Shown: positions 3,932 to 62,897 of the stretch, piece after piece | How positions within the stretch are numbered: position 1 is the first letter of the stretch | Layout: every line of letters starts with the position of its first letter | Assembly: GCA_051294905.1 (NCBI GenBank) | Contig: CM119384.1 | Span: 17,608,001-17,672,000 of the forward strand | DNA: 64,000 nucleotides | Source: Botryllus schlosseri | Taxonomy: Eukaryota | Reading direction: 5' to 3' | Made by a program: the position numbers and the translations under genes | The notes under the pieces: model-generated | Seen by the model: only the letters and a program-made list of their open reading frames with translations | Told to the model about the DNA's origin: nothing | Databases searched by the model: none

Positions 3932-4130
3932 ACGATTTGTTACTGGTGGATACGGAATCGCCAAAACGCGGATACCCGGGAGGAAATGTCACGTTGCCCT
4001 GCGAGTACACGCCGCCCGGCAAAGAGCAGCGCTATTTCTTGCAAGTGTACTGGTTCAAACGTTTGCCCGACAGGCGCGAGAGCGTTTTCAAAATCGTTCA
4101 CGTCTTTCAGAAATCTTTCGGAAAATACAG
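3932..4130 (+). CDS. Ig V-set domain 1, N-terminal half (strands A-C'')
   Basis: DDLLLVDTESPKRGYPGGNVTLPCEYTPPGKEQRYFLQVYWFKR...QKSFGKYR. Acceptor ttctgcgaacag (phase 1; alternative AG would start the exon at 3907), donor AG|gtgagg (phase 2). Confidence 0.85.
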
Positions 4131-4205
4131 GTGAGGTAACGATTTAGGGGACCAATGTCGAATGGCAATGAAACTAGTAATTCGACTATATCTTGCTAAC
4201 TGTAG

Positions 4206-4363
4206 AGATCGTGTAACCGTGTCGCCGAATCGCGGCAATGCGTCACTCACGATATCGAATTTAACAAGCGACGACGCCGGCAGATACTTTTGTGACGTAA
4301 GCATTGCTCTGAAACAAAATCGCGCCAAGGTGCAGCTTATAATCGAGAATGGAGCTGATTCGG
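4206..4363 (+). CDS. Ig V-set domain 1, C-terminal half
   Basis: RDRVTVSPNRGNASLTISNLTSDDAGRYFCDVSIALKQNRAKVQLII contains the V-set D-x-G-x-Y-x-C motif. 75-nt intron upstream; donor G|gtgaga. Confidence 0.9.
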
Positions 4364-4432
4364 GTGAGACCATCCTGTCATGCTGAGCTTATCGCTTCAA
4401 TGTAGTATTGTTAATCAACTTTTGCGTTACAG

Positions 4433-4485
4433 CCGATGGAGGCGTCGGTAGAGATGTTACAACTGTAAGAGTTACCAGAACAGAG
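4433..4485 (+). CDS. Short linker exon
   Basis: ttacag|CC GAT GGA...ACA GAG|gtgagt encodes ADGGVGRDVTTVRVTRTE; phase 1 to 0 fits both neighbours. Confidence 0.75.
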
Positions 4486-4724
4486 GTGAGTTCCCTACTT
4501 TCTCAGGGAGCTACGTTTTTAGAATACTTAAAATTCTGCTTAAACCGTTGTCTCAATCAAAACCACTTTTTTGTATTTTGAACAGTGACATTATTAGTTT
4601 TGGGATAAGTTTGGATCACTTACATTACATACATGTTAAATCGTCGTTAGAACCACTTGAAATAGCAATCACAGTAAATGTTGCATATATGATCGAGAAA
4701 TGAACACATTCGTTGTGTCATTAG

Positions 4725-5291: not shown

Positions 5292-5545
5292 GTCATTAGT
5301 CGATTGTGCTAGTCACCAAGATGTAGCTTGGAATTTTGAAAGTAGCCCCCGCCGATTTGCCAACAAGAGTATTCAAACCCCAATTCCAATCCACGTTTCT
5401 AAACTACTTACTTAAAATACCACTTAAATACTTTTGAGACCTTCATTTTTACTTCTACCCGAAGCCGTGTTGTCATGTCTTGAAAATCGCCATTCTACTT
5501 GTAATTGAGTATCAATTGACGGCGTTCCTGATACTTCTACTTGAG

Positions 5546-5701
5546 CAGGAGTGGGCAAAATTTTTCTCCGCGGGCAAAATGAGTTCCATAAAATACATTG
5601 GCGGGCCGAGTCAAAATCTTTAGCTATATTCTCCAGCATATTAATTTTATTTCTAAATTGAGAGCTAGGTGAAGTACAGGGCCGCACTTTGCTCAGGTCT
5701 G
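5546..5701. mobile_element. Internally deleted copy of the 422-1776 hAT MITE family
   Basis: Both ends match the 422-1776 element; TSD tacttgag/tgcttgag. Confidence 0.8.
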
Positions 5702-8582: not shown

Positions 8583-8763
8583 AAGACCGCAAGGGCAAGC
8601 AAGCAAAGATCGTGGGAACGGTGGGTGGGTCAGTGTTGCTGCCATGCGTGTACAAGAAAAAGTATGGCAATTTGCAAGTTCGTTGGCTGAAGAAGAAGGG
8701 AAAGAAAACCGAAAAAATTCTCACTCGAGAACCAATATCTATTGAATCTTACGGATCTTTCAG
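8583..8763 (+). CDS. Ig V-set domain 2, N-terminal half
   Basis: KIVGTVGGSVLLPCVYKKKYGNLQVRWLKKKG...IESYGSFR; ttttatag acceptor, AG|gtaaca donor (phase 2). Confidence 0.9.
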
Positions 8764-16093: not shown

Positions 16094-16268
16094 GAATACT
16101 ATTAAAAGGTGAGGTGGGTGGCATTGTAACTCTGCCATGCATTTACCAGACGAATCATTCGGTCGTATGGCCTAATCCAACGAAATTATGGACTGTATCT
16201 GACCTTGAAACCCCACAAAAAGTGGCAATGATGAATTTCTTTGATATTGAATCATACGGCAGTTACAG
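16094..16268 (+). CDS. Ig V-set domain 3, N-terminal half
   Basis: ILLKGEVGGIVTLPCIYQTNHSVVWPNPTKLWTV...IESYGSYR; cttgacag acceptor, AG|gtaatg donor. Confidence 0.88.
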
Positions 16269-19004: not shown

Positions 19005-19168
19005 AGGTCGTTCCCGTATATCTGCATCTACTGGCAATGCATCCTTGACAATATGGCAACTAAGGGAGAATGATACCAATGTATATGAATGCAAAATCAC
19101 TTCAGACCAAGAAAATGTTCGCGCCATTGTGAAACTTGAAGTCACCCCGAAGTACATTCCTCATGCGG
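19005..19168 (+). CDS. Ig V-set domain 3, C-terminal half
   Basis: RGRSRISASTGNASLTIWQLRENDTNVYECKITSDQENVRAIVKLEVTP; ctattccag acceptor, G|gtatgc donor. Confidence 0.88.
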
Positions 19169-19230: not shown

Positions 19231-19423
19231 TTGACCTAAACTTAACAACAAGAACGCCAGTATTTGGTGTTGCTGGAGAATTGGTCACGTTACCTTGCAT
19301 ATTCAACGCATCTAAAGTGGATGTTTTCACTCTTCGTATTGAATGGCTCAAGAAAGTTGCTGGAGAAACCGTGAATGTGTATAGACAAACTGGTCTGGAA
19401 TATGAACGCTTCGGACACTATCG
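19231..19423 (+). CDS. Ig V-set domain 4, N-terminal half
   Basis: DLNLTTRTPVFGVAGELVTLPCIFNASKVDVFTLRIEWLKKVAG...ERFGHYR (not in the ORF track, read manually). 62-nt intron upstream; donor CG|gtaaga. Confidence 0.88.
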
Positions 19424-19481: not shown

Positions 19482-19639
19482 GGGTAGAACACGACTACCA
19501 TTTACTCTTGGTGATGCGTCTTTGAATATTTGGCAACTGAAGTCCCAAGATGCTGGAATGTATGTTTGCAAAGTCTCTGGAGTCAATCGTACAGAAAAGA
19601 TTATCACTGAATTAATTGTGGAGTCATTGTCAGCCCCAG
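19482..19639 (+). CDS. Ig V-set domain 4, C-terminal half
   Basis: RGRTRLPFTLGDASLNIWQLKSQDAGMYVCKVSGVNRTEKIITELIV; 58-nt intron upstream; donor G|gtactt (phase 1). Confidence 0.9.
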
Positions 19640-20372: not shown

Positions 20373-23300
20373 ATATAGGGACTGCAACATATTCAAATCC
20401 TTTGAAAGATGACGAGAATAAGACTGCAGTTTTGCTAGTATCGGCACAGACTACCCCAACAAAGATGCCATTACTGTCTGCCGCATCTCATACCTCTCAA
20501 TTTCAAATGATACTTGGAACCGACCGAACATATTCTCCCGAATCTAAACCAATATCAACAATTAAAATTATCGAAAAACCCATCACAGATGAACAACTAA
20601 GCACCCCTGTGTGGCAATCCGACACAGCAGTGTTATCTGAAGCCATGACAGAAACAATGCTCAGATTGCCCCCAAAAGAAATTGGATCTACGCCTGTTAA
20701 CAACATTGAACATTATAGGACCACCAATATTCCGGACATTGGTGTTTCGGAAGTATTATTGCTGAATGTCACTGTAGGGATATTACCTTATTTTATTCCC
20801 TCGAATAAGTCTGAAACCTTTACCATGCCAGTCACAACTCTAGAACAACTAATTGAGACAACTTCTGGAGATGTCAGAGCTTTACCAGAAGTGACTTCCG
20901 CCCAACCCAGCTATGCAACATTGACATCTGATGAAACAACTACTTTGTCACAAATGTTGTCAACGACAGCGGCGCATTCATTTTCCTCGGCACTGAACGC
21001 AATCAGTTCTGCATCAACCCTTCAGAGCGAAATTCGAGGTAGACGTCATAATTCGACACATGTCATTGTTGATGATGATGGCACGTCAGGAAGGCTTTCA
21101 ACTTTTGCAAAGAGCACCGAGCTGTACAAGGATATCAGCAACACAACTACATTTGAACGAACTATCAGAACAGAAAACATGACAAGATCAACCCATCTAC
21201 CACATCATGCTAAGACTAAAGAAGGTGTAAAACCATCTTCAACTTCTCTGCATCATGTAACTGAATCTTCAGGTCAATTTCCCCATACCTCTCCCAAACT
21301 TTCGTTGCAAAGTTCAATTATAGATAAATCCCGCGAATTGCATAGTTCAAGTGTTCAAAAAACAACTTCTAGCGTTTTGAGAATGAATTCAAGCTCTTCT
21401 CTTGTCAATATGAGCACCAGTAAAGAATTAATAAAGTCGTCGACAAAACTGTATGAAGCATCCAGAATGCCGGATTTTAATCATTCGCAATCGACAAAAG
21501 TGTATGAAGCATCAAGAATGCAGGATTCCAATCAATCACAATTTCCTTTCACCCGTAATACGTTTTCCAAAGCGCGCACATTCTCTCAACACTCGGCTAC
21601 TATGGATATAATTGATGCTTCATCTGACTCTTACGATGATAAAGATTCTCACGTTGTTACTATCCTTGATGATGAGTTATCAAGAACGTCAAATAAAGAA
21701 CCAATTTCCATGCAAGTTTCTCTACCGACACGAAAAGCTGAATTACTAGACATATCGCCATCATATACTCCAAGTAGGTTCACTGCATCACAGCAGCAGT
21801 ATTTGACCTCAAACCCACAATTCTTCAACATTTCAAGTAACGTGGGGATTTATGATGATGGATTTACAGAAGTCACCAAGCAATCTGTGAACGGGACTAC
21901 ATTAATGGGAGAAGCTAAAGATATGACCAAAACCGCAAATAATATGGATGCTACAGAAAATGCAACAACTACTATGGTTTCCACAGTTTCTTCGCCATAC
22001 ACTGTGTTAGGAGTTAATGGGTCACAATCGACGCTGTCGAATTTTATCAGTAAATTTGATGATTCAATATCTGGAAGTGGAAGCATTCATTCCGAAGCGA
22101 TTGTATCTACCAGTAAAAATATTGTTTCTCAGTCTAACGCAGCATCAGATACCTATTCAATGTCATCCACGCCAACTAGCATTTCCAGTCAATATTTTAT
22201 GAAAGTTACACCTCTGCCGAAAAAGATTGTGGGTGAATACCAGACTTCAGTGCCTTTGTCATATAAACCATCACTATATGCGAAACTATCATCAACTACG
22301 CGCAAAGATATAAATCTCATGAGAACCAATCTCATTCTAAATGCAACCCTATCTGATGATGGAGAGAGGATTTATAGCGGATCAGAACCAACAGTGACTA
22401 CTCTTAGAGAAGCAGATACTCCTTCAGATCATACCATTTCTATTAGTCTTAGCCCATATACGTCAACTGGTCAGGCTGAAGCATCTGCATCTGATACTTC
22501 TGAATTATCTACTGAAGGAGTTAGATCAGCGCAAAAGACAACGGTTGCGTTGGTGAATACGACTGTAATCAATGGAGGGGTTATTCAAACCTTATCAACA
22601 ACATCTGGATCTACACCGGATGTAGTATTAAGTATTGACGGAAGTATTGATCATTCAATTCCAATGCCTCCGACACTAACTTCCAGGCCTGTAATCTCAT
22701 TTCCTGTTCGCTCAACACCTTGGTCGTCTGAAATTCATTCAGTATCTGAAATAAATCGCTCATCTTCATATGGTACCTCCCCCAATATCCAGTACACACA
22801 TCCTCCAATATTCTCCATTGCTTCTAGTCCACATTATTCCAGTCAAACTTCAGACATCCCGAAGGTAACGGAGTCTGATACGTTTGTATATTCCGGTGCT
22901 ACTGAAACTGCGTTTGACGAGCTATCAAATGTTTCCCGTGTTGTTGAAAATTTGTCATCCTATATTTGGTTGACTACAGGACCAGAAACGTCATTCATTG
23001 ATATCTCAGACCACGAATTTATATATACCGCTACGGATGAAGATTCCAATGCTTATTCACAAACACCAAAATCTCAGATTGTAAGAAAAGACCATGATGA
23101 AGTATATGAAGATTGGGATAAATATTCGACACGGTCCACTGACAAGGAATCATCTATAAATCCAACAACTAATGAAGACTTTTCAGGTAGTGGCAATACA
23201 GAAGCTATTGCGACAGTTATTCAAAACATGGCCTCAACTCAGACCAGCACATCTTTTGGGTTATTTACACCTTCCAGAAATGATCTTACCTCTGAACGAA

Positions 23301-41300: not shown

Positions 41301-44300
41301 TGCAACCAACAACTTCTTTACAAAGTGTATATTTCAGTGATGGAACTACGGGAACAGAAGTTATTGAACTGGAAACTGCGTTTGAAGTGAATGTATCTGT
41401 CGATCAAACATTCATGCCAAAATCATTAACCCCATCACAATATTTTTCGAAAAATATAAGTTTTAAAAATTCTGCTTCTATTCCAGTGTATTGGTATACT
41501 AAGGAAGCAATCGAAGGATCTTCAATGCTTCAATATTCAACTCTGTCGTCGGATGATGCAGAATTATTTGCACCTTTATTAACTACTAAAGAGGATAATC
41601 AGAACTCAACAGGGGAAACAGAAACCGAAAAAGTAGAACATTTTCTTTCAACTTACAGTGATATTCAAGGCAACGTAACACAAACAACCGTATCATGGAT
41701 ACAACAAACTTCATTTCAAGACGGATTGATACCTATGTCGTCATCTGAGTCAATAGAAAGTACATATCCCACTGAAATCTCCATTTCAACATCACAAAAT
41801 ATTCCAAAGAGCTCTCCAATTCCATCACAATTGTATCATCCTTATGCCTCATCAAATACCACGTCCAAAACTCGAAGTACTTATTCTTCTGCAGCATTTA
41901 TCACAAGCACCTATGACATGCAGAAATCTCGTGATGTAGCGGTAAATCAGCAACTTTCAACCATGGCACAAACTGAAATAATACCAACAGAGCATAGCAT
42001 ATCAAGTGATGATTTTCAATCTACACTGTCTGTAGAGTCATTACCAGATACTACAACAGATGAAAAAATTTATGGGAGTGGCTTTGCTGAAACGGGATCT
42101 CAAAATGCGTTAGATGCTATTACTGCTTACAGTTTATTTGATGTTAAAGCAAATTCGACTCAAGCGAGTTATATTACGCTGAGTTTTCCAGCTGACGGGG
42201 AAATTTCAGGCAGTGGACTTTTCGAGGCACATGAGAATGCAACCCCAAACATTGTTTCGCCAACAGTAAAACCTTATCAGCAAATGTATCTAGGTGACAG
42301 GAGCACTTTCAGCAGATCGTCTATTTCACCAGCCATATTTACTGCAAAAATACCTTACAGCCATACTATCAGCAAGATGTCACCAACTTCACTGCAGTCG
42401 GAAGGAGGTTCCAGTCAAACAATCCCAACATTCACAACGTCATTTAAGGAATCTGAAATTTCGAGAAACCCTCTAAATTCCACTCAGTACCAATCTACTT
42501 CAGTAATAGTTGATGCTACTTCTGGGAGTCATGCTGTGAATTCTACATTTTTATCTGATATAACTTCCCCCAATATTGAACTATCGAGTCTGGTCCGTAT
42601 TTCGGACATACCTTCAAGTACATCAGCAGTTGTATACCAAACAATTTCTCCGGACGCGATGGAAAATACAACTACAAGGAATGTTTCTTATGCCAATACT
42701 GAAGAGTCAACGCTGAGTACTTCAACAGGGAAGAGCTATACCGGCAGTGACTTTGCTGAAAACACAACAATCATTGCCGAAGACATTTCCTTGGGAGTGC
42801 AGGATTCAACATACAACGATGTTGACGTGACTAAATTGGAAACAACCAAATTAATATCTCAAAACATTTCTTTTACTGATGTCCCTAAATATATTATATA
42901 TTCTGAGGAGCCAGCTGTTAACAAACCAAAAGATTATTTTGATAGTGAGATTGCTTCAACAGCAGATATAACACTTCCATATAGCACGATGACGCGGAAA
43001 GCTATATATTTCCCTGCGAACTTGCATTTGAATCAGACATCCTCATTAAAAACTCTTGGTTCCACAGAAATGTCAACATATATCATCGGATCTCAAGCAA
43101 TTATTAATGCTTCAAAGAGTCAGATTTTTGACAATACTGTGCAGCATTATGACATGACTACTTCAGATATTGAAGTAATTTCAGGCAGTAAGATTGATGT
43201 AGCAACTGTTCCACCAGTGGGAAACACTACCTTCCAAGAAGAAGAAACGACTAAAATTAAATCAATGTTTGCTCGACCTTTTAACACAATTAAGGTCAAC
43301 ATAAATGCTTCGCCAGGGAAAAGTATACCCAATGGTCGTAACAGTACTGAAATGGAAATCAAGACATCCGGAAGTAAAAATGAATACATTAGTCGAATTT
43401 ATACTTCGTCCCTTGGAATTCAATCTGAAATGATGGTACCAAAATCTACAACATTATTTTCGAAACTAACAGGTTCTCCTGGCCTTCGCGATTCTTCAAT
43501 TTCATCAGAATCTCAGTTTCCAACACAGCTATCAATCAGTTCATCCTCGCTTGATTTTTCTGAGACTGGTGACTTTAATGTCTCTTCGCGCATTTTCAGC
43601 AGTACTGGTGACGATCTCATATCTCCAACACTTGCTACCGGCTTGTCTGAAGAAACTCCACCATCAATGAAAGACACCACATCGAGATTCATAAAAAATG
43701 ATGCATCAGCGGCTTCTACGACATACACTGGATTGAAATTCGATAGATCACAGGAAACACCAATGCCTTTGCTAAGTGTATTTTCTAGCTCCAGCAGCAC
43801 ATACGCTGAAGGTGATATTATCGAACCAGCAACCTCTCATAAAGTAGACATATCCATGATTCATACTCCTGTTCAAAAGTCACCGAATGCTTCATTAGCT
43901 TATTTATTATCCTCCGGGCCTTCTTCAATGCCAACGACTTACCAGAATGAAACATTGATGCCTGGTACGGCCGATGACTTAACACCATCCTCCCGCAATT
44001 CTTCGTCAACAGAATCTTTGATTCAAAATCTGCCATATTTTACTAGTGAAAAACCCTCTACATCGATTTATCAATCAATGGATTCACCTCAGTTCCATTT
44101 TTCACCGGAGTCTACCACTAATAACGCTAAGATGACACGGGGAAGCACCATCAATCTGCCAGTGACTCCTGACATTTATATCACTAAAGAGAATAACACA
44201 CGACAGTCAATGATGATTGCTCCGAAAGGTGGATCCCTTGGTAATGTAATTGACGGAATTGATATTTACCAAATAACAACTGTAGATACACCGCGTGCAT

Positions 44301-45371
44301 CTTCCGGTCAAATTACCGTTGAATTGCCCGATACCAGACAAAATTACTCGACATTGTCAGATTATCAAGAAATATCTTCTTATTTCAAGCATCCATCAAC
44401 CACCTCTAAAACACACAAAAATATTTCTGAAATTCCAAGTCAGAGTATATCTTCTATTTTTGAAGATAGCATATCAACGATGGCTAATATACGAGGAACT
44501 AGTTATGCAGCAACCGCTCTTGTTAGAAGTAAGGTTTCTACTAGAAAAATGATCTCCGGCGCATCAGAGGCTTCGACAAACGAAAATGTATTAAATGATG
44601 TATCTTCTGAAGCCGTGGAAATTATCAGTGAAACAGTTTTGCCATCTATATCTGCACTTGGAATTTCCAATCAGCAACAGATTTCAGCTGAAGCATCAAC
44701 GATCATTGAACTGAAGTCTTCGAGTGAAACAGTGCCTGTATCTACGTCAGGATTACGAAGTGATTTTCTTACTAGCACTTTTTCGCCTTACTATTCAACA
44801 GAACCATTTGATGACACAATGTCTTCAGATATTAGTCTGATGCGAAGTTTTTCACCTGTCACTAACAAAGTCATCAAGAATGCTTTAGAATTCAATTATT
44901 CCAGGCCTGTAATAACAGAGCTACCTGATATTTCAGTCGATGAAGACACTACGATTGGTACGATTCCTGGCACGGAGTTCATGTCATCAAATCCAGCAGA
45001 AAAATCTACTGAGCTTGAAACTACTGCTTCAAAACAAACGTTTGCAGGTAGTGCATTGTCCGCTACGGCTGTCAGGGAAGAAATTACAAAAAGTGTCGAT
45101 ATTGAAAGTATGTCCAGCAAAGAAAAGATTGAAATTACAAAGCTGACAAGTACTAGAGTATCTGAAACAGATATATTTGAATCTGCTGCACACATGTCAA
45201 ACAGAATGGATGACAGTTCAATTTCTGTAACAAGCTTACAGTCAGCGTTACCCGTGAAGAGTTTGAAATTGTCGCACTCTCGTTATTCCACCGGAACAAC
45301 CAACATACCAGCACAAGGCGAAGAATCAGAGTCATTAACAACTACATTGCTTCTGTCAAGCACTGAATCAG
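20373..45371 (+). CDS. Giant 24,999-nt exon (8,333 codons): Ser/Thr/Glu/Asp-rich GAG-attachment / mucin-like region
   Basis: ORF 20402..45433 is open throughout. Acceptor ctcttattacag|AT ATA (phase 1) is in frame; candidate donor TCA G|gtatcc at 45372 (phase 1). More than 20 acidic-SGSG-type motifs and no Cys seen on read-through. The 3' boundary is inferred. Confidence 0.85.
23660..39950 (+). repeat. Coding tandem repeat array (about 290-300 aa units; near-identical core about 26830-36570)
   Basis: DDELSGSG-type markers at 26831, 27728, 28598, 29495, 30392, 31262, 32159, 33029, 33926, 34796, 35666 and 36566 (spacing 897/870 nt, last 900). Degenerate flanking units have markers at 23921, 24629, 25334, 26162, 37451, 38315, 39170 and 39923. 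Confidence 0.92.
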
Positions 45372-45385
45372 GTATCCATTTGACC

Positions 45386-46654
45386 CAGTGGTTCTCAAAC
45401 TTTTTGACCTCGCGGCACACTTTCAAAATGTAAAATAGTTCACGGCAAACCAACACACTGGTTCCCAGCTTTTTGTTGGCTTACGGCACCTGAAAACTAC
45501 CAGAATAGTTAGCATGCAGCGCCTTATACAGTCGTACAGAGGTGGTCTCTGACGAAGTACTTCTCTTTTTGCGGAGCATTCAAGTACGATTTGCTATGCT
45601 TCGATGAATAAATTACGGTATCTTCTATATCTGCGGACATGTCACAAATACGTCTACGAATAGCATCATTTAACACGGGAATCGTTTTCAATTCTTCCGC
45701 TGCCTTGGTTCCAAATATTTTTTTTACAATTCTAGTGCAAGCTGGAAGAATAACGTTCTCCGCTTCCGTGTGAGGTGTTGAATTTTTAGCGATTACCTCT
45801 GCCCCCACATAACTAGCCTAATGCGATCTCGTTGAAACTTCGACCTGCACTTCCTATTACATAAGATTTATTCGACAATAAACTCTGCCCACTATACCAC
45901 GCATTGTCGATGTAATTAACCAAAGCGTCGAAGAGACCAAGCACAATCGCCACAGACGAATACACAGGATACAAGGATATTAAAGTCATTTCCACGCGGA
46001 TCGTGTAGCACGCGTGAGGATTGCAATACCTAGTTCTATTGGGTCACCCGCAGTTCAATTATAGTTCCAACAAACCGGGATAATAATCTCAAAGGCGGGG
46101 AAATTTGTAAACTGATATAATTTGATCAACCTTACTTCTCACTTATCAAATTCGTTGCCTGTAACATAACGTTGCTCTCCGCGCCTACATTTTAACGGGA
46201 TAGCCGGCACGTTGTTTAACAATCGCAATGTGGATGGCTATTGTGTTGTCATTCGAATTTTTAAACGTGAACACAAATTCCAAAGCAGTTCATTTCTCGC
46301 AGGTGATCAGGTAGACGATAAGGATTTTAAAACTACATTGTAATAGAGGCGACGCCATGTCTGCTCTCCTCTGCGTTCAGTCAACGAATTGTGCAAAACT
46401 GAATTCAGCCTTCCTGGCACACTATATGTCTGGTAAAGCGAATTCGCGCTAGATGTTGATTGCGGGTATGACAGCAATTGGGATTTGTCAAATGTATAAC
46501 TTCACATCGAGCCCGTTTTTGATTATTGATCGTTTGCTATAGACTAGAATTATTTTGCGCTAAATTTCGAAATTCCGGAAAATTCTCTCGCGTCACCCTT
46601 CCGAGACGTAAATGGCACACTAGTGTGTCGCGGCACACCGTTCGAGAACCATTG
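45386..46654 (-). mobile_element. Defective hAT (Buster/Charlie-type) DNA transposon with transposase remnant
   Basis: TIRs cagtggttctcaaac ... gttcgagaaccattg and 8-bp TSD atttgacc/atttaacc. Minus ORF 45524..45808 (AENVILPACTRIVKKIFGTKAAEELKTIPVLNDAIRRRICDMSADIEDTV) resembles ZBED5/SCAND3/Buster-type transposase sequence. Confidence 0.9.
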
Positions 46655-46957
46655 ATTTAACCTCTTCAATGCAACCTTCCAATTCAATTCTGAGCCAAAC
46701 TTGCAATGGTACTTTTAAAGATTCCAGTCATGATACACAGGAGGGATATTCTATGACTGCTACAATGGATAAATCCACATTTTCCGCATCTGCAATTACT
46801 GGATATGTTACGACCATATATAGCACCTCATTTCAACAACGAACATCCACACCTATATCCAAACGATTTCTGCAATATTCTGTCTTAGATAGTAGCCTTA
46901 CTTCTGATTCAAAGCAGAATACTGCTCCCCGATATGTCCCAGTATAAACCCCTTTAG
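46655..46957 (+). pseudogene. Decayed former coding segment of the giant exon (in-frame S/T-rich sequence with premature TAA at 46945-46947)
   Basis: After removing the element and one TSD the frame reads ...SGIHLT-SSMQPSNSILSQ... continuously. A single TAA separates it from ORF 46990..48468, which is in the same frame. Confidence 0.65.
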
Positions 46958-48424
46958 CTGTAGAAAGCATTCTTTTTACAGATACTACGTTGGCACCTAT
47001 TTTTGAAGCTGAATCTTCAATGGAAAATTTCAGTACTGCTGTGTACAACCCGACAAATGCAACAGGATTGTCGTCCACCAGGGGTTCTGATCTAACTGAG
47101 GCTTCTACAGCAGCTTCTGGATCTATGTCATCGACTATTGTTAGTCGTACATTTTCGCATGATAGAGGTGGTTATCTGTCACCAAATGCCACAGTTCAAC
47201 AAGGAAATATGACTACTGCAAATTCAAATTTAGGATCAAATAAAACATCCGTTATATTACGGAGTGTGTCTACATCCACTTATGTGACACAGAGCCTTTC
47301 ATCAAATCCAGATCCTGCAGCAACCTCAGGGAGCATTTTGATCGGTCCCAAAATGATCAATACATCCCTATCTCCGTCTACGGCACAATCTCCCACACAG
47401 GACAGCAGTTCATATGATGATGCAGGATCTTTGCCATCAAGGAGAATACCTGCAGTAACAAAAACGTCTGAATTACCAGACACGCCCTCGACAACTACCA
47501 GGTTCTCTGATATAGATCATACATATGTACCAGTCACCACCCTTCTACAATTGTACACCATTGCAGCTGCACATGCTGATGATGTTCTGACCTCAACATC
47601 AATTTCACAAGATGTTTCCAGATCTGTTGAATCTACCCATAAACCATCTGAGACAAACACAAGTTCACCTAGAATGACGATCGCTCATTCAAAGTCAATT
47701 TCGCCTACATCCCGTTATGAAGGCACTGAGCTAAGCAATTCAACTGTTCCTCTAACTCAAAAAGGATTATCATACACCTCAACAATTGCTGACGCAGAGA
47801 AAAGATATGGGAAATTTCCATCAGGCACCGACGATTTTGAATCACCATCATACACCGTATCTACTAACAAATTAACATATGAAGTCGTATCCAGTGCTTC
47901 CAATTTGATCCAAACCTCTCTAACATCAATAGTGAACGCAACATCAATACGAAGTTTGCCTACTCTGGTATATTCCATATTGAACAATATTTCAAGTTCC
48001 AGCCATCCTGTCGATACTGCGAACCGGACTGAAGCAGAAATACGGTCTTATTCAACACATAGTTTGCATTTCCCCTCCCAGGGGCCCTTAGTTCACAGAA
48101 CTTCCAGCTCAGTGACTAATCTGTTGCAGAAACAAGATAGAGAAAATGCTACGGAGGAATTGAATGAAACAACTGTAATTTCCTCAGTTTCAATGGTGGA
48201 AGCAAATGTGACTGTGAGTGTACGTAACGTCTCATCAACACCTCTCCCATTTCCTGAGTCAACAGAACCAGGTGTTCCCTATTTTACTAACATGACTGAA
48301 AAGCAGCCTCAGATGCTGCAGACATTGAATATGACAGATTCAAGACAATACATCTCGAATGGGTCACCTCCCACAACCACCAAATCTTCGCCAAGTGCAG
48401 TCTCCGTTACAATGAAAGAGACAT
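46958..48424 (+). CDS. Ser/Thr-rich exon (distal part of the GAG/mucin region)
   Basis: ORF 46990..48468, donor T|gtaagt at 48425 (phase 1). Candidate acceptor cccctttag|CT (phase 1) lies 10 nt after the premature stop. Start coordinate inferred. Confidence 0.7.
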
Positions 48425-48487
48425 GTAAGTATTATCCCACAGCGGTAATTCCTTACCTACTTTTGTAATGTACCTATTCATTTTTAG

Positions 48488-48640
48488 TATATTGCCCAAC
48501 AGAATGGGTAATGTTCCAACATAACTGCTACAAACATTTTACAAAGAAATTGCGGTGGCATGCAGCTGAAGAGAAATGTGCTGAATTTGATTCTAACTTG
48601 GTCAGCATCCACAGTGCATCAGAAAATGACTTTATTTCAG
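48488..48640 (+). CDS. C-type lectin domain 1, exon a
   Basis: YCPTEWVMFQHNCYKHFTKKLRWHAAEEKCAEFDSNLVSIHSASENDFIS; 63-nt intron upstream; phase 1-1. Confidence 0.92.
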
Positions 48641-49752: not shown

Positions 49753-49832
49753 GACAAGCAAGAGTATCGCAATGGATTGGATTAAAATCTGAAAGAGGAA
49801 GCACATCTATGTGGTCTGATGGAACAGCTATG
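49753..49832 (+). CDS. C-type lectin domain 1, exon b (WIGL motif)
   Basis: GQARVSQWIGLKSERGSTSMWSDGTAM; donor ATG|gtgagt (phase 0). Confidence 0.9.
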
Positions 49833-50449: not shown

Positions 50450-50729
50450 GACTATCACAACTGGAGAAGAAGGGGCGAAAACAGGAAAAAAACAAGGTGC
50501 GGAATGCTGCTACAGAAAGCCGCCAAATGGTCTCTCACTGTTTGCAACAAAAAGAGGAGGCAGTTTGTTTGCAAGATGGCTATTCCGGACAGTACGACAT
50601 CTGCTGGCAATGCTGCCACCATTGCTTCTTACACACCACCCGTAGATAGCACAGACGTCCATAGATTACAAACTGAGACAAGACTTAATCTACCCACCTC
50701 AGATTTCCTGATTACTGATATAATAACAG
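50450..50729 (+). CDS. C-type lectin domain 1, exon c plus Thr-rich linker
   Basis: DYHNWRRRGENRKKTRCGMLLQKAAKWSLTVCNKKRRQFVCKM then linker; atgttag acceptor, G|gtataa donor. Confidence 0.88.
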
Positions 50730-51269: not shown

Positions 51270-51374
51270 CATGCGATGCAGAAACATGTCTAAATGGGGG
51301 GAAATGCTCAGAAGTGGAATCAGCGCCCTTGTGTAATTGCGCCGAGGGATTTGATGGAGTCATTTGTGAAATAG
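51270..51374 (+). CDS. EGF-like domain 1
   Basis: ACDAETCLNGGKCSEVESAPLCNCAEGFDGVICEI; 105 nt, phase 1-1. Confidence 0.92.
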
Positions 51375-51433: not shown

Positions 51434-51550
51434 ATGTGGATGAATGCTTCAATGGAAAATGCGACCAGTTTTGTACTAATACCTTTGGTTCGTACATATG
51501 CTCTTGCGACATTGGGTTCCGTTTGGATGAAACTGGAGAAAGTTGTACAG
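51434..51550 (+). CDS. Calcium-binding EGF domain
   Basis: [39 protein letters not shown] has the D-x-D-E-C and C-x-N-x-x-G-S-Y-x-C signatures; 117 nt, phase 1-1. Confidence 0.93.
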
Positions 51551-52883: not shown

Positions 52884-53311
52884 GTTATATTATTTATAAT
52901 CACAAAATGTACAATCCGATACACAAGACATAATGCGCAATGCAACGTAATTAGCAGATAGAATAATACTTAAACGAACAAGTACAATATGAACTACTGT
53001 GTTAAGAAATTATTGCCCAACAATTATGCATGAAAACTCAAATATAGATAGTCTTTGTTCGAAAAAGATTTCACAGATCAACAGATTGTGGTATTATATT
53101 TTGATTAAATGTTTATTTCAAAAGTATTTTCTCTCTTCATATTATATCAGTTTATTTGTATCACCATTTATATTGCCAAAATGTATTTTCTAGAATCTAT
53201 ATGATACCCGATCATATTATCATATGTAAGAAATTTCTGTAAAACTCCAACTCAACAATTGAAGTTCTGTACCTACAAGAATCTCTTCTAACACAACAGT
53301 TCACCATGCAG

Positions 53312-53413
53312 ACTTGTGCGATTCTGAAAGATGTCTCAATGGAGGCACTTGTATCCCGAACTCTGGAGAATGTTTATGTTCCCAAGGATTTGTGGGTACG
53401 AGATGTGAGATAG
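53312..53413 (+). CDS. EGF-like domain 3
   Basis: DLCDSERCLNGGTCIPNSGECLCSQGFVGTRCEI; 102 nt, phase 1-1. Confidence 0.92.
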   Translation, partial: TCAILKDVSMEALVSRTLENVYVPKDLWVRDVR

Positions 53414-54930: not shown

Positions 54931-55038
54931 AGACTTGTAGCCCTACATCATGCTTAAATGGTGGCACATGTATTCCTGGGATGGAAAGATACTCTTGTTT
55001 GTGTGCAGACGGATTTGCAGGTCATAGGTGTAAGGCAG
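54931..55038 (+). CDS. EGF-like domain 4
   Basis: ETCSPTSCLNGGTCIPGMERYSCLCADGFAGHRCKA; 108 nt, phase 1-1 (read manually). Confidence 0.92.
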
Positions 55039-56573: not shown

Positions 56574-56738
56574 ATATCAAAACACCATGCATGACTGGCT
56601 GGCTCAAGTTTGAGGGATATTGCTATCAAGGGCAAAGAGACAAGCTTCCATGGTTAGAAGCTGAGCAATATTGCAACGATCGCTACAATGCAACGCTACC
56701 CAGTGTCAACTCGATACACGAAAATAGATTCCTTAACC
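56574..56738 (+). CDS. C-type lectin domain 2, exon a
   Basis: DIKTPCMTGWLKFEGYCYQGQRDKLPWLEAEQYCNDRYNATLPSVNSIHENRFLN; phase 1-1. Confidence 0.92.
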
Positions 56739-56792: not shown

Positions 56793-56866
56793 GTTTCGGC
56801 AATAACTTTCAATGGCTCGGTTTGTCTCAATTGCAAAGACGGCGATGGACGGATGGTTCCCCTGTA
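56793..56866 (+). CDS. C-type lectin domain 2, exon b (WLGL motif)
   Basis: RFGNNFQWLGLSQLQRRRWTDGSPV; 54-nt intron upstream; donor GTA|gtatgt (phase 0). Confidence 0.88.
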
Positions 56867-58198: not shown

Positions 58199-58325
58199 AC
58201 TTTCAGAAACTGGAAAAAGTCAAACCCTACGGATGGTTGTACGCTTATGTCATCCTCACAAAGCGGGATGTGGAACACAGTGAAATGTTTCCAAAGGGTT
58301 GGATTCATTTGTAAAGTCGCACCTG
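58199..58325 (+). CDS. C-type lectin domain 2, exon c
   Basis: TFRNWKKSNPTDGCTLMSSSQSGMWNTVKCFQRVGFICKVAP; phase 0-1. Confidence 0.9.
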
Positions 58326-58383: not shown

Positions 58384-58560
58384 TTGGTTGCAGAAAATTG
58401 CCGGCTGTATCGTTCGCTCGAGTACACAATCTGAGAGAAGTGTACAGTCTTGGGGAAATTGCACAATATTCCTGCCAGAGTGGCTACAAACCAACCAGTC
58501 AAACTATAGTAGAATGCTTGTCAAGCGGACTATTTTCGGAGCCTGATTTCCAATGTGTTG
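58384..58560 (+). CDS. CCP/sushi domain 1
   Basis: GCRKLPAVSFARVHNLREVYSLGEIAQYSCQSGYKPTSQTIVECLSSGLFSEPDFQCV; 177 nt, phase 1-1 (read manually). Confidence 0.9.
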
Positions 58561-58673
58561 GTAAGTTTTAGAGGATTTAGTATGTGTGTGTGATAATGCT
58601 GATTGTGATAGGCGTAATTTGTTTATTTACCTTGCATCGGTACATATGCGACAACAATATTAGCACTATGTAC

Positions 58674-60623
58674 CAGGGCTGTAACCAAGTCACATGGTTC
58701 CGAGACACGAGTCAATCTTACTTTTGTGGTTTTGACTCGAGTCAAGTTGAGTCATTTTCAATTAATCACCGAGTCGAGTCCGAGTCCAAGTCACCGTTTT
58801 AAAGGTCAAGTCCGAGTCATTGTGTTATGACTCGAGTCCGAGTCCAAGTCACAGTATTGAAGTCATGTTCAACTTATGTTTTCAATCCTGCTTGGGTGAT
58901 ATCGAATTCCCTGCTTGCCAAACATGCTTATTTTGTCCCTATCATAGTCTTGGCACATGTTTATTTAGCCAGATTACGGACAGTTCCTGGCCTCATTTAC
59001 CGATGCTACAGATAGACGAGACAGGCCGCCAATATGATAGCTTTACTAATCTTAGAACTTTAAATCAAATATCTGTCTTTTCAGTATGATATATCACAAA
59101 TACAAGCATTCAGTTTTTATTACGAGCACATCGACGACCGCTCACAAATAGCTTATAGAGAATTAATGAATTCACGTCTACATACTATCTGATAGAGAAC
59201 CAACGAATTCACGTCTACATACTATTTGATAGAGAACCAACGAATTCACGTCTAGATACAAGCTGGTAGAGAATCAACGGATAAACGTTAAGTAGAGGTG
59301 CATTTTTGCTTTCACATTATCAGGTGGTTGACCAGAAAAACGTCAACTTTCCTGCTCAGCTCCCGAAATAGTCGCCAGAGCGTTACTTTAGTGCTGATTT
59401 ACTGTTATCTTAGTCGAATTCGCCCTACATTTACCAAAAATTCTCAAAAATGAGGACAAAATCTCTAGAAGGAGGCTACTTCTTAAAATTGTTAGATTAT
59501 CTAAAAGAACTTAAATTTGGCTCAATTCTAACCAGTAGAAAGCAATGCCAAGAGAAAATATTTCGGATTAATTACAAATTGAGACTTTCGAATTTTACCG
59601 GCTACCTCATGATATTGTTAGATTGTGTAAAAATATGATTCATAGCAAATTTGGCTCAATTCCAACTAGAAGAAGCGAAGTTATTATAGTGGAATATTTT
59701 GGATATGAAAAAATAGTCGACTTACTAGTATGTAATTATATTATATGAAATCCAAAATTTTCTCCTCTCGTATCATTGATTCTACTTTTTATATAATTAA
59801 GCCAGATTCAGTGTTCTTTTTATGCAACGTAACAATTTTATCAAGTAGCCACCCAGTAGAATAAACAAGAAGTTATTTTTGATCAGCCCTATTGTACAAA
59901 CATCACACAACATTAGCCATTCAATATTACTCACGTGCACAATGCACATACCTAACAAAACGTCAAATGGACGGAGGGTATTGTGTGTTTTCACAGACAG
60001 CAGATCAAATCAGTGAGTTAAACTTCAAAAATACTAAAGTGGAGATCCTCAGATATGTTAAAGCGGCATGTCCTTAGAATAATCCACATCCACTGGATAC
60101 AAGTTCCACTGGTGCATTCTACACATGAGCGAATCAGCCTCTTCCAAGTAGGCTACTTGACCATCTGAGTCATTTCATTGCCTCTAATTAAACTTTGCTT
60201 CGATTGTTTGCTTGTATAATTGATAAGTCTTGAGTACTATGATGGCGTAGGATCTATTACCTCTTTATCACTGGATGATTTTGTACAATGCACTGCTACT
60301 ATGTACCATTGTCTTTTGTTTTTACGGCGGCATATCTGATATAACACGAGTGCAACGAAAGCAGTGGTGACAAATAGCGATGTCGCCAGAATTCGTCACA
60401 TGCGTTGATCTAACCATTGTGATTCGCAAATTTCTTCACCTGCAAGTCATATAAAATAAGCCAAGTCAATGACTTGAGTCGAGTCATGCGTAATGACTCG
60501 AGTACAAGTCGAGTCAATCCAAATATTGACTCGAGTCGAGTCGAGTCATTTTCCCATTTCAAGAAAATGACTCGAGTCAAGTCGAGTCACAAAAAAATCG
60601 AGACTCGAGTCATTACAACCCTG
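58674..60623. mobile_element. Non-autonomous hAT-type element with gactcgagtc subterminal arrays
   Basis: TIR cagggctgtaa ... ttacaaccctg; perfect TSD ctatgtac; dense gactcgagtc arrays at both ends. Confidence 0.88.
59165..59280. repeat. 37-bp minisatellite, about 3 copies, inside the 58674-60623 element
   Basis: aa(c/t)gaattcacgtctacatactat(c/t)tgatagagaacc starts at 59165, 59202 and 59239. Confidence 0.8.
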
Positions 60624-61766
60624 CTATGTACCTTGTTTTAAATGATATTGTGAACTCTCATCGCTGTACGCAACTTAACAGTGAACATCGTATTCTGTTT
60701 ATCCAACTCGCATAGGTACATATGCGACATCTATAGTGTAGCACCGTTTACCTTATTTTAAATCAGTGGTTCTCAACCGAGGGTCCGCGAAGCATTTTCA
60801 GGGAGTTCGCGAAGCCTCTGAATTTACAAAATAGTTGATAACCTAATTCACGAGGCAGTTTCGCTTCATTTCTAGTAGAACTCACATCAACAGAATGGCC
60901 GTCTGAGATGAAATATCCTGCTGTGCAGACTAATTTTTGATGCTAAATTGCCAATAGTGATACTGATAAACTGATACAAATATTTTGCTGTATAGAGATT
61001 TTTTGTTAGGGACTATGTAAAAAGTAAATAATTGGATTAGTAAAGTCAATCACGGTGACTTCGAAATATTTACAAAAATCCATTCTCTCCTGTGATTTAG
61101 GCATACATAATAATTTTTCGATAATAACGTCAAGATGAGCTGCTAGGTAGAAATGAACAGGCTTGTCGTTATATGTTCAATAAAAAGTTGATTGTCAATT
61201 TTGGTGTCATAATTGTTGCGATCATACCCAAATGTGTCGTCGGTAGCGTTACGCGTCATTATTACATTCGACACCACATTTCTTTGTCTGAGTCGGTTTT
61301 CAGCACTCGTTGATATGAAATAGAAGGTACGGATTTTCAAGACACGACCACGCATTTCAAGAAATGCAGTTGCAGAATTCGCTTTGAAATGATAAAAGTC
61401 AACCCAATTTCTACATAAATAGTATGATGCTATTTTCAAGGAAAGTCATTTTGTTGCTGTTTATCACTATCCTTACAGTTATCATTTACACAAGACAGTT
61501 GTGCTTCGTTACCGACCACCTCTGGGAAATGTAGTCTGCGATTGCTAAAGAAGCCTTTTCAAACTTTTCAGCCCTCCATGCCTACTCCCACCTGAAATAG
61601 ATCTCACAGGCCTTGGAACTCACTACTTCTTGTAATTTATACTTTTACTTCTACTTGTGTACCAACACTTACTACTTTGACGATCCCTGGATATTTGCCA
61701 GTCTTTCAATGTGCATCAGTTTTGCTGGGATTTTAAAAGTATATAATGTCACATTGTCACATACAG

Positions 61767-61940
61767 GAACGTGCCCTTCACCCCCGAACGTGCGGAATGC
61801 AATCAGCCCGCTCTTGTCGGAGTATTCTGTTTCGGACACCATTAAATATGCCTGCAACTCCGGTTACAGACTAGAAGGAGATGCATTCATACGGTGTAAT
61901 CCGGATTTGACGTGGACACAGCCGCAGTTTAGATGCGCAG
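61767..61940 (+). CDS. CCP/sushi domain 2
   Basis: TCPSPPNVRNAISPLLSEYSVSDTIKYACNSGYRLEGDAFIRCNPDLTWTQPQFRCA; 174 nt, phase 1-1. Confidence 0.93.
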
Positions 61941-62720
61941 GTATGTTTGACAATCGTGACCTGAGGTGGTCAGTTACAAAATACGTCTCCTTTTAGAAGA
62001 CAAGTGGATTATGTCTATTCAAACTGCTTGTCCATCTGTATACGTTTTTCGACTACTTTTGAAACCCGACTGCTTACTTTTTTCTTTTCGATTTTGTCAC
62101 GCCAAAAGAGTATTTGATTAGATTCGCTTCTATATTTCTTGAGTGAAATTGATATGGCAACTAGACGATGCAGACCCAATATCCCGATACCAGGTTACTG
62201 CACCTATTTGTATCTCATTACTCATTCTTCGCTGGCCTCGAAGATGCATTTGGCAATTCACACTGACACTGTCACTGACTTTGTCGATTAAATAACGAAA
62301 GTCTGCGACTAGTATGGAATCTACCTGCTTGACTATTTTGTTTGCTTGTTTTTTCCATCCAAATTATATTTTTCATGTCTCAAAACCGATACTTTTTCTT
62401 GTAATTGAGCAGGAATTTACCACATTTAGAGAGAGAGAGAGACAGCCTTTATTTTCATCCAGCCAAAATACATAACAAACAGACAGCATTGATGGTGCTA
62501 CAGAAAATATGCATGCACATGCACAGTATTCGGTATCAGATAAGAATGATCGATACGATCGTGAAGGTCAACTAGTCTGATCACGCCCGCATCAAACAGA
62601 TACACTTGTCTCTACACTTGTCCGCATTACTTCTACCTGTATTGTGTAGCAACAAAGACTACTTTTGTCCGCCTCTGATGGTGACATGGTGGATTTATAA
62701 TTGGCACCGCTATTTTGCAG

Positions 62721-62897
62721 CTCTATGGTGCTATGATCCTCCGAAGGTAGCGGGCGCGTCATGGTCCGGTCGCAGAACGAGAGTCAGACTACCAGTCGGA
62801 AGTTATCTTCGTTATATTTGTAAAAGCGGAAGTGGTGAATACAAGCTCCAGTGTGGATCTGATGGAAGATTTGAAACTCCAAATTTCAGCTGTGGAG
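62721..62897 (+). CDS. CCP/sushi domain 3
   Basis: LWCYDPPKVAGASWSGRRTRVRLPVGSYLRYICKSGSGEYKLQCGSDGRFETPNFSCG; 177 nt. It ends in donor G|gtatgc, so the gene continues. Confidence 0.88.

Follow-up and report, generated by a model that had tools for sequence, protein, structure and literature searches.

The window analysed here, a stretch of 64,000 nucleotides of the Botryllus schlosseri genome, carries on its plus strand an array of 23 exons that, in a hand-built model, join into a stop-free frame of 9,942 codons, with AG and GT borders at 23 of 23 exons and phase 1 at every module border. Between the first acceptor, at 3932, and the last donor, at 62897, this frame encodes four V-set Ig domains, an 8,814-residue centre rich in Ser, Thr and Glu, a CTLD, four EGF domains, a second CTLD and three CCP domains, in this order (Table 1). 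The first-pass annotation had proposed a single spliced frame of about 10,000 codons with identical limits, the order IgV x4 - GAG region - CTL - EGF x4 - CTL - CCP x3+ and a GAG region of about 8,800 residues, all of which are reproduced, as is its count of EGF domains (Pfam EGF in four segments); the motifs it quoted are all present in the translation, where they read GGNVTLPC, LRIEWLKK, SYGSYRGR, GDASLNI and DAGMYVC. Taken exon by exon, Pfam detects V-set halves in seven of the eight Ig exons, Lectin_C in four exons, EGF or EGF_CA in four and Sushi in three, while the largest exon lies within an open frame of 8,362 codons, a length beyond the reach of chance. The locus is thus likely to be a single, expressed gene of this ascidian, whose product, a giant modular proteoglycan of matrix or mucus, has 9,942 or more residues.

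Table 1. Features of the gene model, with positions in the window and supporting evidence.
Feature	Position	Strand	Evidence
Ig1 N-terminal half-exon	3932..4130	+	phase 1 in, phase 2 out; Pfam V-set positions 3-44; splice sites
Ig1 C-terminal half-exon	4206..4363	+	Pfam V-set positions 59-94, E 1.5e-7; splice sites
Ig2 N-terminal half-exon	8583..8763	+	Pfam V-set; splice sites
Ig2 C-terminal half-exon and Ser/Thr-rich linker of ~55 aa	15604..15911	+	Pfam V-set; splice sites
Ig3 N-terminal half-exon	16094..16268	+	aligns with the other three N-halves; no Pfam match alone
Ig3 C-terminal half-exon	19005..19168	+	Pfam V-set E 2.1e-6
Ig4 N-terminal half-exon	19231..19423	+	Pfam V-set; words in RNA runs X1-X4, X6
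Ig4 C-terminal half-exon	19482..19639	+	Pfam V-set; splice sites
Giant exon, 24,999 nt	20373..45371	+	open frame; donor 45371 RNA-confirmed; acceptor 20373 predicted, 20379 equally possible
Intron with transposon-like insert	45372..46981	+	removed by splicing in RNA contig
Second Ser/Thr-rich exon, 481 aa	46982..48424	+	both borders RNA-confirmed
CTLD1 exon a	48488..48640	+	Pfam Lectin_C; joints RNA-confirmed
CTLD1 exon b (WIGL...WSDG)	49753..49832	+	RNA joints 48640>49753, 49832>50450
CTLD1 exon c and linker	50450..50729	+	Pfam Lectin_C positions 68-107; acceptor RNA-confirmed, donor predicted
EGF, first of four	51270..51374	+	six-Cys pattern, phase-1 borders; Pfam EGF
Calcium-binding EGF	51434..51550	+	Pfam EGF_CA 6.3e-7, FXa_inhibition 4.2e-9
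EGF, third	53300..53413	+	Pfam EGF/hEGF
EGF, fourth	54931..55038	+	Pfam EGF 4.4e-8
CTLD2 exon a	56574..56738	+	Pfam Lectin_C; PDB CTLD matches
CTLD2 exon b	56793..56866	+	WLGL...WTDG motif; phase 1 to phase 0 borders
CTLD2 exon c	58199..58325	+	Pfam Lectin_C positions 67-106; PDB matches
CCP (Sushi) 1	58384..58560	+	Pfam Sushi 4.2e-9
CCP (Sushi) 2	61767..61940	+	Pfam Sushi 9.3e-12
CCP (Sushi) 3	62721..62897	+	four-Cys/Trp pattern, splice sites, Pfam Sushi; ends at phase-1 donor

Contigs from RNA runs contain the GT..AG joints 45371>46982, 48424>48488, 48640>49753 and 49832>50450, these four junctions connecting the giant exon, the second Ser/Thr-rich exon and CTLD1; two raw RNA-seq runs gave essentially zero reads for the gene. 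The junction between Ig4 and the giant exon (19639>20373) is taken from the model, as are the donors and acceptors downstream of CTLD1. The former joint being a predicted one, and a phase match at one junction occurring by chance about once in three, the Ig exons might belong to a gene separate from that of the giant exon and the CTLD, EGF and CCP exons, the single frame being an artefact of phase-compatible exons. Considering that (i) nowhere does the giant open frame offer a credible start codon followed by a signal peptide, (ii) no stop or terminal exon occurs among the Ig exons ahead of it, (iii) independent gene models from Styela and Ciona connect Ig straight to the Ser/Thr-rich region, that of Styela continuing to the CTLDs, and (iv) words of the Ig exons are present in the same RNA runs as the giant-exon/CTLD1 part, two or more genes here appear highly improbable. 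Neither a start codon, a signal peptide nor a stop codon is found inside the window, whose borders thus truncate the gene on either side. Its 5' end probably falls beyond the window, since a signal peptide followed by a Kazal domain opens the Styela and Ciona relatives and no Kazal exon occurs in the window, and at the other side it probably extends further, CCP3 terminating in a phase-1 donor.

The centre, formed by the giant 25-kb exon and a 1.4-kb exon, contains 17.8% Ser, 14.0% Thr, 7.8% Glu, 4.8% Pro and no Cys, the product of the giant exon including about 25 repeats of roughly 290-299 residues. Acidic SGxG is the consensus for glycosaminoglycan attachment, and among the 25 SGxG sites of the centre, which recur with a period of about 290-299 residues, the DDELSGSGL(L/F)EF type predominates; SG dipeptides number 131 versus 56 expected, 105 of them in acidic context. 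Glycosaminoglycan substitution of the centre is predicted from these sequence features, and a Ser+Thr content of 32% would also suit a molecule that is for the most part mucin. A mucin of this kind, secreted or tethered and belonging, for instance, to the gut, the tunic or the mucus net of the endostyle, would carry O-glycans only and leave its SGxG sites unused, in agreement with the Ser+Thr content, the 193 N-glycosylation sequons and the lack of Cys, as well as with the classic Thr/Pro/Glu mucin repeats of the Ciona relative. We consider this rather unlikely, given that SG is enriched 2.3-fold and mostly acidic-flanked, and that SGxG is the best-conserved feature of each repeat even where repeats share just 25-50% identity. 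In addition, the Styela centre, similar in composition, shows a comparable SG excess (2.4-fold), Pro is low for a mucin domain, and Pfam searches of the window's open segments detected no vWD, SEA or cystine-knot domains.

The best relatives are two proteins annotated as "uncharacterized". Styela clava XP_077974545.1 (5,738 residues) consists of a signal peptide, a Kazal domain, a V-set domain, a 5,252-residue Thr/Ser-rich region and two CTLDs, while Ciona intestinalis XP_026695689.1 consists of a signal peptide, a Kazal domain, two V domains and a mucin-like region. All four Botryllus Ig domains match these proteins best (35-41% identity), which fits the invertebrate-chordate host, here an ascidian, initially supposed. 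The Botryllus gene is, thus, a member of a tunicate family with annotated, uncharacterised members in Styela and Ciona. It shares with the Styela protein the order of V-set, giant SG-enriched Thr/Ser-rich centre and CTLDs. On the contrary, the signal peptide and Kazal domain of both relatives are not seen in the Botryllus window, and Styela displays a single Ig and is annotated with neither EGF nor CCP, its gene model being truncated, versus four Ig domains, EGFs and CCPs in Botryllus. The CTLDs of both species are just 31-38% identical and do not pair one to one; the relation of the Styela protein to that of Botryllus may accordingly be one of paralogy, not of orthology.

As to layout, lecticans (aggrecan, versican, neurocan, brevican), versican most of all, find in the Botryllus protein their closest invertebrate counterpart. 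In both, V-set Ig on the N-terminal side is followed by a long centre, free of Cys, rich in Ser, Thr and Glu and sparsely supplied with acidic SGxG, which a giant phase-1 exon encodes, and the C-terminal part keeps the order EGF-CTLD-CCP, with the CTLD in three exons. The CTLD exons follow phases 1-1-0-1 and measure 153/80 (CTLD1 a/b) and 165/74/127 (CTLD2), those of the aggrecan CTLD being 159/83/145. Unlike lecticans, the Botryllus protein has four Ig domains, each divided between two exons by a phase-2 intron, a further CTLD, four EGFs, three or more CCPs, a centre 3-4 times the length of that of versican V0, and CTLDs that have both lost the Ca2+/sugar-site motifs. Link modules are absent from the window, as had been claimed: Pfam Xlink gave zero matches in the 220 plus-strand open segments of the window, and a HAPLN-derived Link HMM reached a best E of 1.4 over its 2,003 six-frame segments. 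The protein is lectican-like, but by definition not a lectican. The description of the gene as holding every lectican module except Link is appropriate for the layout of IgV, giant-exon GAG-type region and EGF-CTLD-CCP; nonetheless, it omits the Kazal domain that starts both tunicate relatives and that lecticans lack.

With regard to kinship, a profile of the tunicate Ig domains gave a median of 51.5 bits for HAPLN1 Ig and at most 49.4 bits for 128 other best-of-library V-set proteins, while the reciprocal HAPLN1-Ig HMM placed tunicate Ig domains at ranks 1-4, 6 and 8 of 134. HAPLN1 Ig is therefore their best non-tunicate match in both directions, with a narrow lead over B7/butyrophilin-type V domains, and a tree split with support 89/85 sets the latter on the opposite side from HAPLN1 and tunicate Ig. 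The proposed lectican/link-protein type of the V domains is retained as a lean, since the margin is small and single-sequence scores of both types overlap. Among solved structures, the Styela CTLD finds its closest match in the aggrecan CLD (105 bits, other single CTLDs reaching at most 77). The expected grouping with lecticans consequently applies to the Ig domains as a tendency, but the aggrecan-like CTLD belongs to the Styela relative, those of Botryllus being divergent and devoid of specific lectican likeness by PDB ranking. Altogether, kinship with lecticans is moderately supported by these comparisons.

Two histories may account for this pattern. In one, the Ig domains and the EGF-CTLD-CCP cassette derive from a common ancestor with lecticans and link proteins, the gene being a true proto-lectican or a sister lineage. 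The lectican module order at both ends, the giant phase-1 exon, the reciprocal HAPLN1 match with its tree split, the Styela CTLD score and the three-exon CTLDs with their phases argue for it, as does the reported origin of lecticans by domain shuffling (PMC11788884, PMC3308698). Against it stand the lead of a few bits over B7/butyrophilin-type V, an AU test that does not discriminate (p 0.47), an aggrecan G1 Ig whose score with the Styela Ig does not exceed those of JAML or CD276, the generic Botryllus CTLDs, and the Kazal, surplus modules and split Ig exon. The "pre-hyaluronan proto-lectican" of the first-pass annotation, sound as to layout and lack of Link, stays a hypothesis that fits the data alike with phase-1 module shuffling or loss of Link; we regard it as plausible but unproven, and as rather less likely than not. 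If true, the lectican scaffold would be older than vertebrates, Link having been inserted later on the vertebrate stem.

In the other history, the lectican resemblance would be a product of convergence, phase-1 modules having been shuffled independently about a mucin-like exon that was expanding. Shuffling of V-set, EGF, CTLD and CCP modules is common in invertebrate deuterostomes, and phase 1 at every module border makes the modules freely exchangeable. The differing Ig numbers (four in Botryllus, one in Styela), EGFs that are absent from Styela's annotated model, the N-terminal Kazal of the relatives, and Botryllus V-sets and CTLDs that rank as generic in PDB searches are consistent with it. 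However, chance assembly predicts neither the reciprocal preference of tunicate and HAPLN1 Ig nor the 28 bits by which the aggrecan CLD leads the other single CTLDs in matching that of Styela, and we regard this convergent origin as a serious contender, though short of probable. The Botryllus gene is, in any case, a concrete candidate for testing the origin of the supposedly vertebrate-only lectican family.

Other known systems resemble it in part. HAPLN1 Ig is just about 30% identical to the tunicate Ig, and HAPLNs, with ~340 residues, one Ig and two Link modules, have neither GAG region nor CTLD. V domains of the B7/butyrophilin/CD276/MOG type share the generic V-set motifs YRGR, DASL and DxGxYxC and are the next-best library matches, below HAPLN1 in both directions, but the Botryllus gene has neither IgC nor B30.2. 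Selectins (CTLD-EGF-CCPn-TM) similarly place EGFs after a CTLD, here CTLD1, and CCP repeats later. Their lectin domain is nonetheless a single exon and N-terminal, whereas in Botryllus the CTLD occupies three exons and is not N-terminal, no transmembrane segment was seen in the window, and the 60 best PDB matches of either CTLD exon a include no selectin. Agrin and testican/SPOCK share with the tunicate relatives an N-terminal Kazal and GAG or mucin-like regions, but lack V-set Ig, CTLD and CCP.

As a proteoglycan, the protein would have its centre extended as a bottle-brush, with GAG chains at the predicted SGxG sites and dense O-glycans elsewhere, forming a hydrated polyanion. Through its two ends, with the Ig domains on one side and the CTLD/EGF/CCP cluster on the opposite side, it would be tied to other matrix or cell-surface proteins, a tethering by end domains that may be likened to that of lectican G1 and G3. 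Both CTLDs being devoid of Ca2+/sugar-site residues, binding to protein is likelier than binding to sugar. The animal group to which it belongs is reported not to make hyaluronan; this, together with the absence of Link, would make anchoring to hyaluronan impossible for the Botryllus protein.

The intron between both central exons, finally, shows terminal inverted repeats in its transposon-like insert (~45386-46654), and also holds apparent former coding sequence at 46624-46944.

The window has a G+C content of ~38%, and its stretch from ~20 to 48 kb displays a strong skew of C over G and of A over T that coincides with a single + strand open frame, 8,362 codons long. Upon translation, open segments upstream of this giant frame were recognized as halves of V-set Ig domains, and those downstream as pieces of C-type lectin, EGF and Sushi/CCP modules. 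The gene model was assembled manually, by scanning for splice sites and keeping track of the frame, and comprises 23 exons with AG/GT borders throughout and 9,942 codons with no stops. Its limits are exactly those proposed in the first-pass annotation, and the gene and domain order described there, including the count of four EGF domains, are confirmed. Phase-1 introns lie at every module border, all four Ig domains are split by a phase-2 intron at the same point, after a conserved Tyr-Arg, and both C-type lectin domains (CTLDs) are encoded by three exons each, with phases 1-1-0-1. Three long introns separate Ig exons, most of the others spanning 54-1,750 nt; no recognizable + strand protein domain was found in the three long ones, and Pfam searches of minus-strand and intronic ORFs of the window gave no match. 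The first visible exon opens in phase 1, and upstream exons must therefore exist beyond the window, no signal peptide or Kazal exon being found in positions 1-3931. Since a phase-1 donor closes the last CCP exon and neither another exon nor a stop codon or transmembrane segment is visible in the following 1.1 kb (62898-64000), the 3' end also lies beyond the window.

Junctions were checked against reads over positions 45000-50900, where those of the model were least trusted. Contigs of RNA run X1 contain four GT..AG joints in this region, which place the giant exon, the second Ser/Thr-rich exon and the first CTLD (CTLD1) in one spliced RNA. Sequence differences of a few percent separate these contigs from the window, in keeping with a polymorphic ascidian. 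The raw RNA-seq runs X18 and X19 have essentially no reads at the locus and are uninformative on expression. Regarding the predicted junction between the fourth Ig domain (Ig4) and the giant exon, a single gene is supported by four points: (i) the phases on both sides are compatible, (ii) nowhere in the giant frame is a start codon followed by a signal peptide, (iii) words from the Ig exons and from the Ser/Thr exon are both present in RNA runs X1-X4 and X6, and (iv) the independently made gene models of two other ascidians join Ig straight to a Ser/Thr-rich region.

Positions of the main features of the gene in the window
Feature	Positions	Remarks
Gene model	3932-62897	+ strand
Intron between Ig exons	4364-8582	4.2 kb
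Intron between Ig exons	8764-15603	6.8 kb
Intron between Ig exons	16269-19004	2.7 kb
Giant exon	20373-45371	24,999 nt
Ten central repeats	~29200-37200	model residues ~2968-5614
Transposon-bearing intron	45372-46981	
First terminal inverted repeat	~45386-45420	
Depth peak, transposon end	45394-45590	RNA-contig words
Intronic Ser/Thr-rich reading	46624-46944	
Stop codon after this reading	46945-46947	TAA
Second terminal inverted repeat	~46628-46654	
Second Ser/Thr exon	46982-48424	
Region of X1 contig differences	47095-48379	
Joint in X1 contigs	45371>46982	
Joint in X1 contigs	48424>48488	
Joint in X1 contigs	48640>49753	
Joint in X1 contigs	49832>50450	
EGF domain, one of four	51270-51374	
EGF domain preceding CTLD2	54931-55038	

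The centre of the protein consists of 8,814 residues (S 17.8%, T 14.0%, E 7.8%, D 5.5%, P 4.8%), with no Cys and 193 N-glycosylation sequons. SG dipeptides are 2.3-fold in excess (131 observed versus 56 expected), and for 105 of the 131, two or more acidic residues lie close by. The consensus on which xylosyltransferase primes glycosaminoglycans (GAGs) is established as SGxG preceded by an acidic cluster; here, 25 acidic SGxG sites, most of which read DDELSGSGL(L/F)EF, recur every ~290-299 residues, the centre being therefore an array of ~25 repeats. Such repeats were detected from motif spacing, Tandem Repeats Finder having missed their ~870-900-nt period, which is above its limit. In the middle of the array, ten repeats, each 290 or 299 aa long, share 71-96% identity, with units three positions apart reaching up to 96% and amplified blocks of about three units, which indicates recent higher-order tandem duplication within one exon; the outer repeats are only 25-50% identical and nevertheless keep the SGxG site. 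A word-index search with residues 1-5000 of the giant exon against proteins of similar length gave no match. Judged from these sequence features, which fit a lectican central region, the centre is predicted to be heavily glycosylated and is probably GAG-bearing, and in its composition, sparse sites and giant Cys-free exon it is closer to versican GAG regions than to the aggrecan CS domain.

Among all 220 + strand open segments of ≥40 aa lying outside the giant exon, no Pfam match was obtained for Xlink (E ≤ 0.1) or for Kazal, their Pfam content being V-set, Lectin_C, EGF and Sushi only. A Link HMM made from 47 HAPLN1 link proteins and applied, with all filters off, to 2,003 segments of ≥20 aa from the six frames had its best E value, 1.4, on a CTLD exon, as expected for a fold-level echo, and a crude Link-motif regular expression found nothing. 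The gap between Ig4 and the giant exon, moreover, is only 733 nt. The absence of Link claimed by the first-pass annotation is thus borne out, neither Pfam nor the six-frame HMM detecting Link exons in the introns or upstream within the window. Lecticans carry tandem Link modules after the Ig domain, and these are absent here; since the definition of hyalectans includes Link modules (Hynes, PMC3308698), the predicted product is not a member of that class. For the same reason it is predicted not to bind hyaluronan. Working independently of hyaluronan would fit reports that tunicates lack hyaluronan synthesis (PMC8508827) and that heparin is the ligand of the ascidian Xlink domain (PMC8508827, PMC12383584). 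A lectican that has secondarily lost its Link modules is the least likely of the three readings weighed here, behind an independent mosaic and a sister lineage that predates Link.

In an exhaustive HMMER search of 1.84 billion representatives, 133 sequences matched a profile of the four Ig N-halves; these were rescored against the complete Ig domains, using a profile built from all four after splicing. The Ig domains of Styela clava XP_077974545.1 (94 bits) and Ciona intestinalis XP_026695689.1 (80 bits) ranked on top, all others scoring ≤58 bits, and the window gene is therefore a member of a tunicate family. The Styela relative, annotated as "uncharacterized", has 5,738 aa arranged as signal peptide, Kazal_2, V-set, a 5,252-aa Thr/Ser-rich region, a CTLD and a second, truncated CTLD; in composition its centre matches that of the window gene, and it contains seven SGxG sites and SG dipeptides at a 2.4-fold excess. 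The Ciona relative displays signal peptide, Kazal, two V domains and a mucin-like region. The window gene shares order and composition with them: its V-set domains, closest to those of the family, precede a giant Ser/Thr region enriched in SG, after which come CTLDs. By analogy, it should have further 5' exons, missing from the window, for a signal peptide and a Kazal module. Several fragmentary gene calls stop exactly at the Tyr-Arg boundary, consistent with the same Ig intron in other tunicates. No description of a Kazal-IgV-mucin-CTLD tunicate family was found in the literature searched.

The N-terminal V-set Ig of lecticans has its counterpart in the four V-set domains of the window gene, in which the first-pass annotation noted lectican/link-protein-like motifs. 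The third-best full-domain match (58 bits) is an unnamed fragment that further search identifies as a teleost HAPLN1 Ig. Scored with the tunicate Ig profile, 74 HAPLN1 Ig domains reach a median of 51.5 bits and a maximum of 64.6, versus a best of 49.4 bits for 128 other library matches, which by their source names are vertebrate B7/butyrophilin/CD276/MOG/pIgR-like proteins; these comparisons apply to a set picked with the N-half profile, in which the lectican/HAPLN group is represented by HAPLN1 only. Reciprocally, an HAPLN1-Ig HMM places tunicate Ig domains at ranks 1-4, 6 and 8 of 134 proteins. The maximum-likelihood tree separates six tunicate Ig, nine HAPLN1 Ig and three long-branch agnathan or reptile sequences from 37 B7/BTN-like domains (UFboot 89, SH-aLRT 85), and constraining tunicates and HAPLN1 together costs 0.75 lnL (AU p 0.47). 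On the other hand, single-sequence scores overlap, the aggrecan G1 Ig (9dff) is no better a PDB match to the Styela Ig than JAML or CD276, and the best PDB match of the Ig N-half profile is amphioxus VCBP3. Spliced window Ig and CTLD domains were compared whole with fetched proteins, while Pfam and PDB queries were single exons or whole domains of the relatives. The earlier assignment thus stands in part, these sequence comparisons pointing only moderately to the link-protein type rather than to B7/butyrophilin. As a whole architecture, B7/butyrophilin (IgV-IgC, with or without B30.2) was rejected, there being no C-type Ig or B30.2 and the B7/BTN-like V domains scoring below HAPLN1, on the other side of the split.

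Specific likeness to a lectican CTLD is seen in the Styela relative but not in the window's own divergent copies. The first Styela CTLD (residues 5488-5626) matches the rat aggrecan C-type lectin domain (1TDQ_B) with 105 bits (E 2.7e-29), versus ≤77 bits for the next single-domain CTLDs (CD23, SRCL/CL-P1), higher PDB totals being those of multi-CTLD receptors summed over several stretches; at the sequence level, this aggrecan match is a specific signal. With the Styela CTLD as query, an Atlas search yielded nothing beyond generic CTLD clusters, and in a word-index search 24 candidates shared words with it, none of which scored. The first exons of the window CTLDs give generic matches of the three-exon type, with aggrecan in the pack at 32-35 bits and no selectin among the top 60 PDB matches; their last exons are weak, that of CTLD2 reaching 14.9 bits to aggrecan and that of CTLD1 being barely recognizable as a CTLD. 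Window and Styela CTLDs share 31-38% identity with no one-to-one pairing, and the first Styela CTLD scores 61-66 bits (BLAST) against either window CTLD, below its score against aggrecan. At the EPN/QPD and WND positions the window CTLDs read ENR/WSL and SNP/WNT, which makes canonical Ca2+-dependent sugar binding unlikely in this copy, while the first Styela CTLD retains a QPR...WND-type Ca2+ site. The Styela relative may be the better tunicate candidate for a lectican-type G3 domain.

The window gene product would be a giant extracellular bottle-brush with a heavily glycosylated centre, flanked by the V-set Ig domains on one side and the CTLD/EGF/CCP cluster on the other, its ends being likely protein-binding cross-linkers. 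In outline, it would work like a lectican, but without the use of hyaluronan.

Two further classes were considered and rejected. In selectins an N-terminal CTLD leads directly into a single EGF, with CCP repeats and a membrane-spanning segment after it, whereas here CTLD1 follows ~9,300 residues and no transmembrane segment is present in the window. With mucins the gene shares a Ser/Thr-rich centre; a gel-forming or tethered mucin was rejected, the vWD, CysD, cystine-knot and SEA/TM flanks not being found in the window by Pfam, and proline standing at 4.8%.

Lecticans are treated as vertebrate-only and associated with mesenchyme, cartilage and perineuronal nets (bioRxiv 10.1101/2020.09.24.311837; PMC3308698; PMC11788884), and no invertebrate counterpart is discussed in the literature searched. 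Their C-terminal EGF-CTLD-CCP unit is present in the window gene (an EGF domain, CTLD2 and the first CCP), with extra modules around it. In vertebrates, lectican genes and HAPLN genes occur as linked pairs. The "proto-lectican" interpretation of the first-pass annotation draws on this lectican-like layout and on Ig domains that lean towards link proteins, and is weakened by the divergent window CTLDs; an independent mosaic of phase-1 modules appears slightly more likely. That the tunicate Kazal-IgV-GAG-CTLD/EGF/CCP genes are a surviving, pre-Link sister lineage of the gene behind vertebrate lecticans and link proteins is proposed only tentatively. If these genes are such a sister lineage, the IgV...GAG...EGF-CTLD-CCP scaffold predates hyaluronan-based matrices and came down to both tunicates and vertebrates from their last common ancestor, and the vertebrate novelty was the insertion of Link only, the proteoglycan itself being older. 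The family, having the lectican layout end to end minus Link, is a named candidate for the pre-Link state, and the origin of lecticans becomes a question of interest in matrix evolution that can be tested on named genes in Ciona and Styela.

For a compact genome, the 25-kb exon is among the largest single coding exons, and the product of the gene is among the longest matrix proteins predicted. Besides the recent amplification of 290-aa GAG-site repeats, the gene shows an RNA-confirmed intron that excises a transposon from the giant exon. This intron holds a transposon-like insert whose terminal inverted repeats start CAGTGGTTCTCAAAC, and it is removed precisely in RNA contigs; towards its 3' end, a Ser/Thr-rich reading persists in the frame of the next exon until a stop codon. 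At the transposon end, the word depth of RNA contigs peaks at 34-42, with one 33-nt contig at depth 120, which suggests transcription of other copies of the element elsewhere in the genome. Within the second Ser/Thr exon, X1 contigs differ at many positions (e.g., 16 in one 409-nt contig), indicating high allelic or population polymorphism there.
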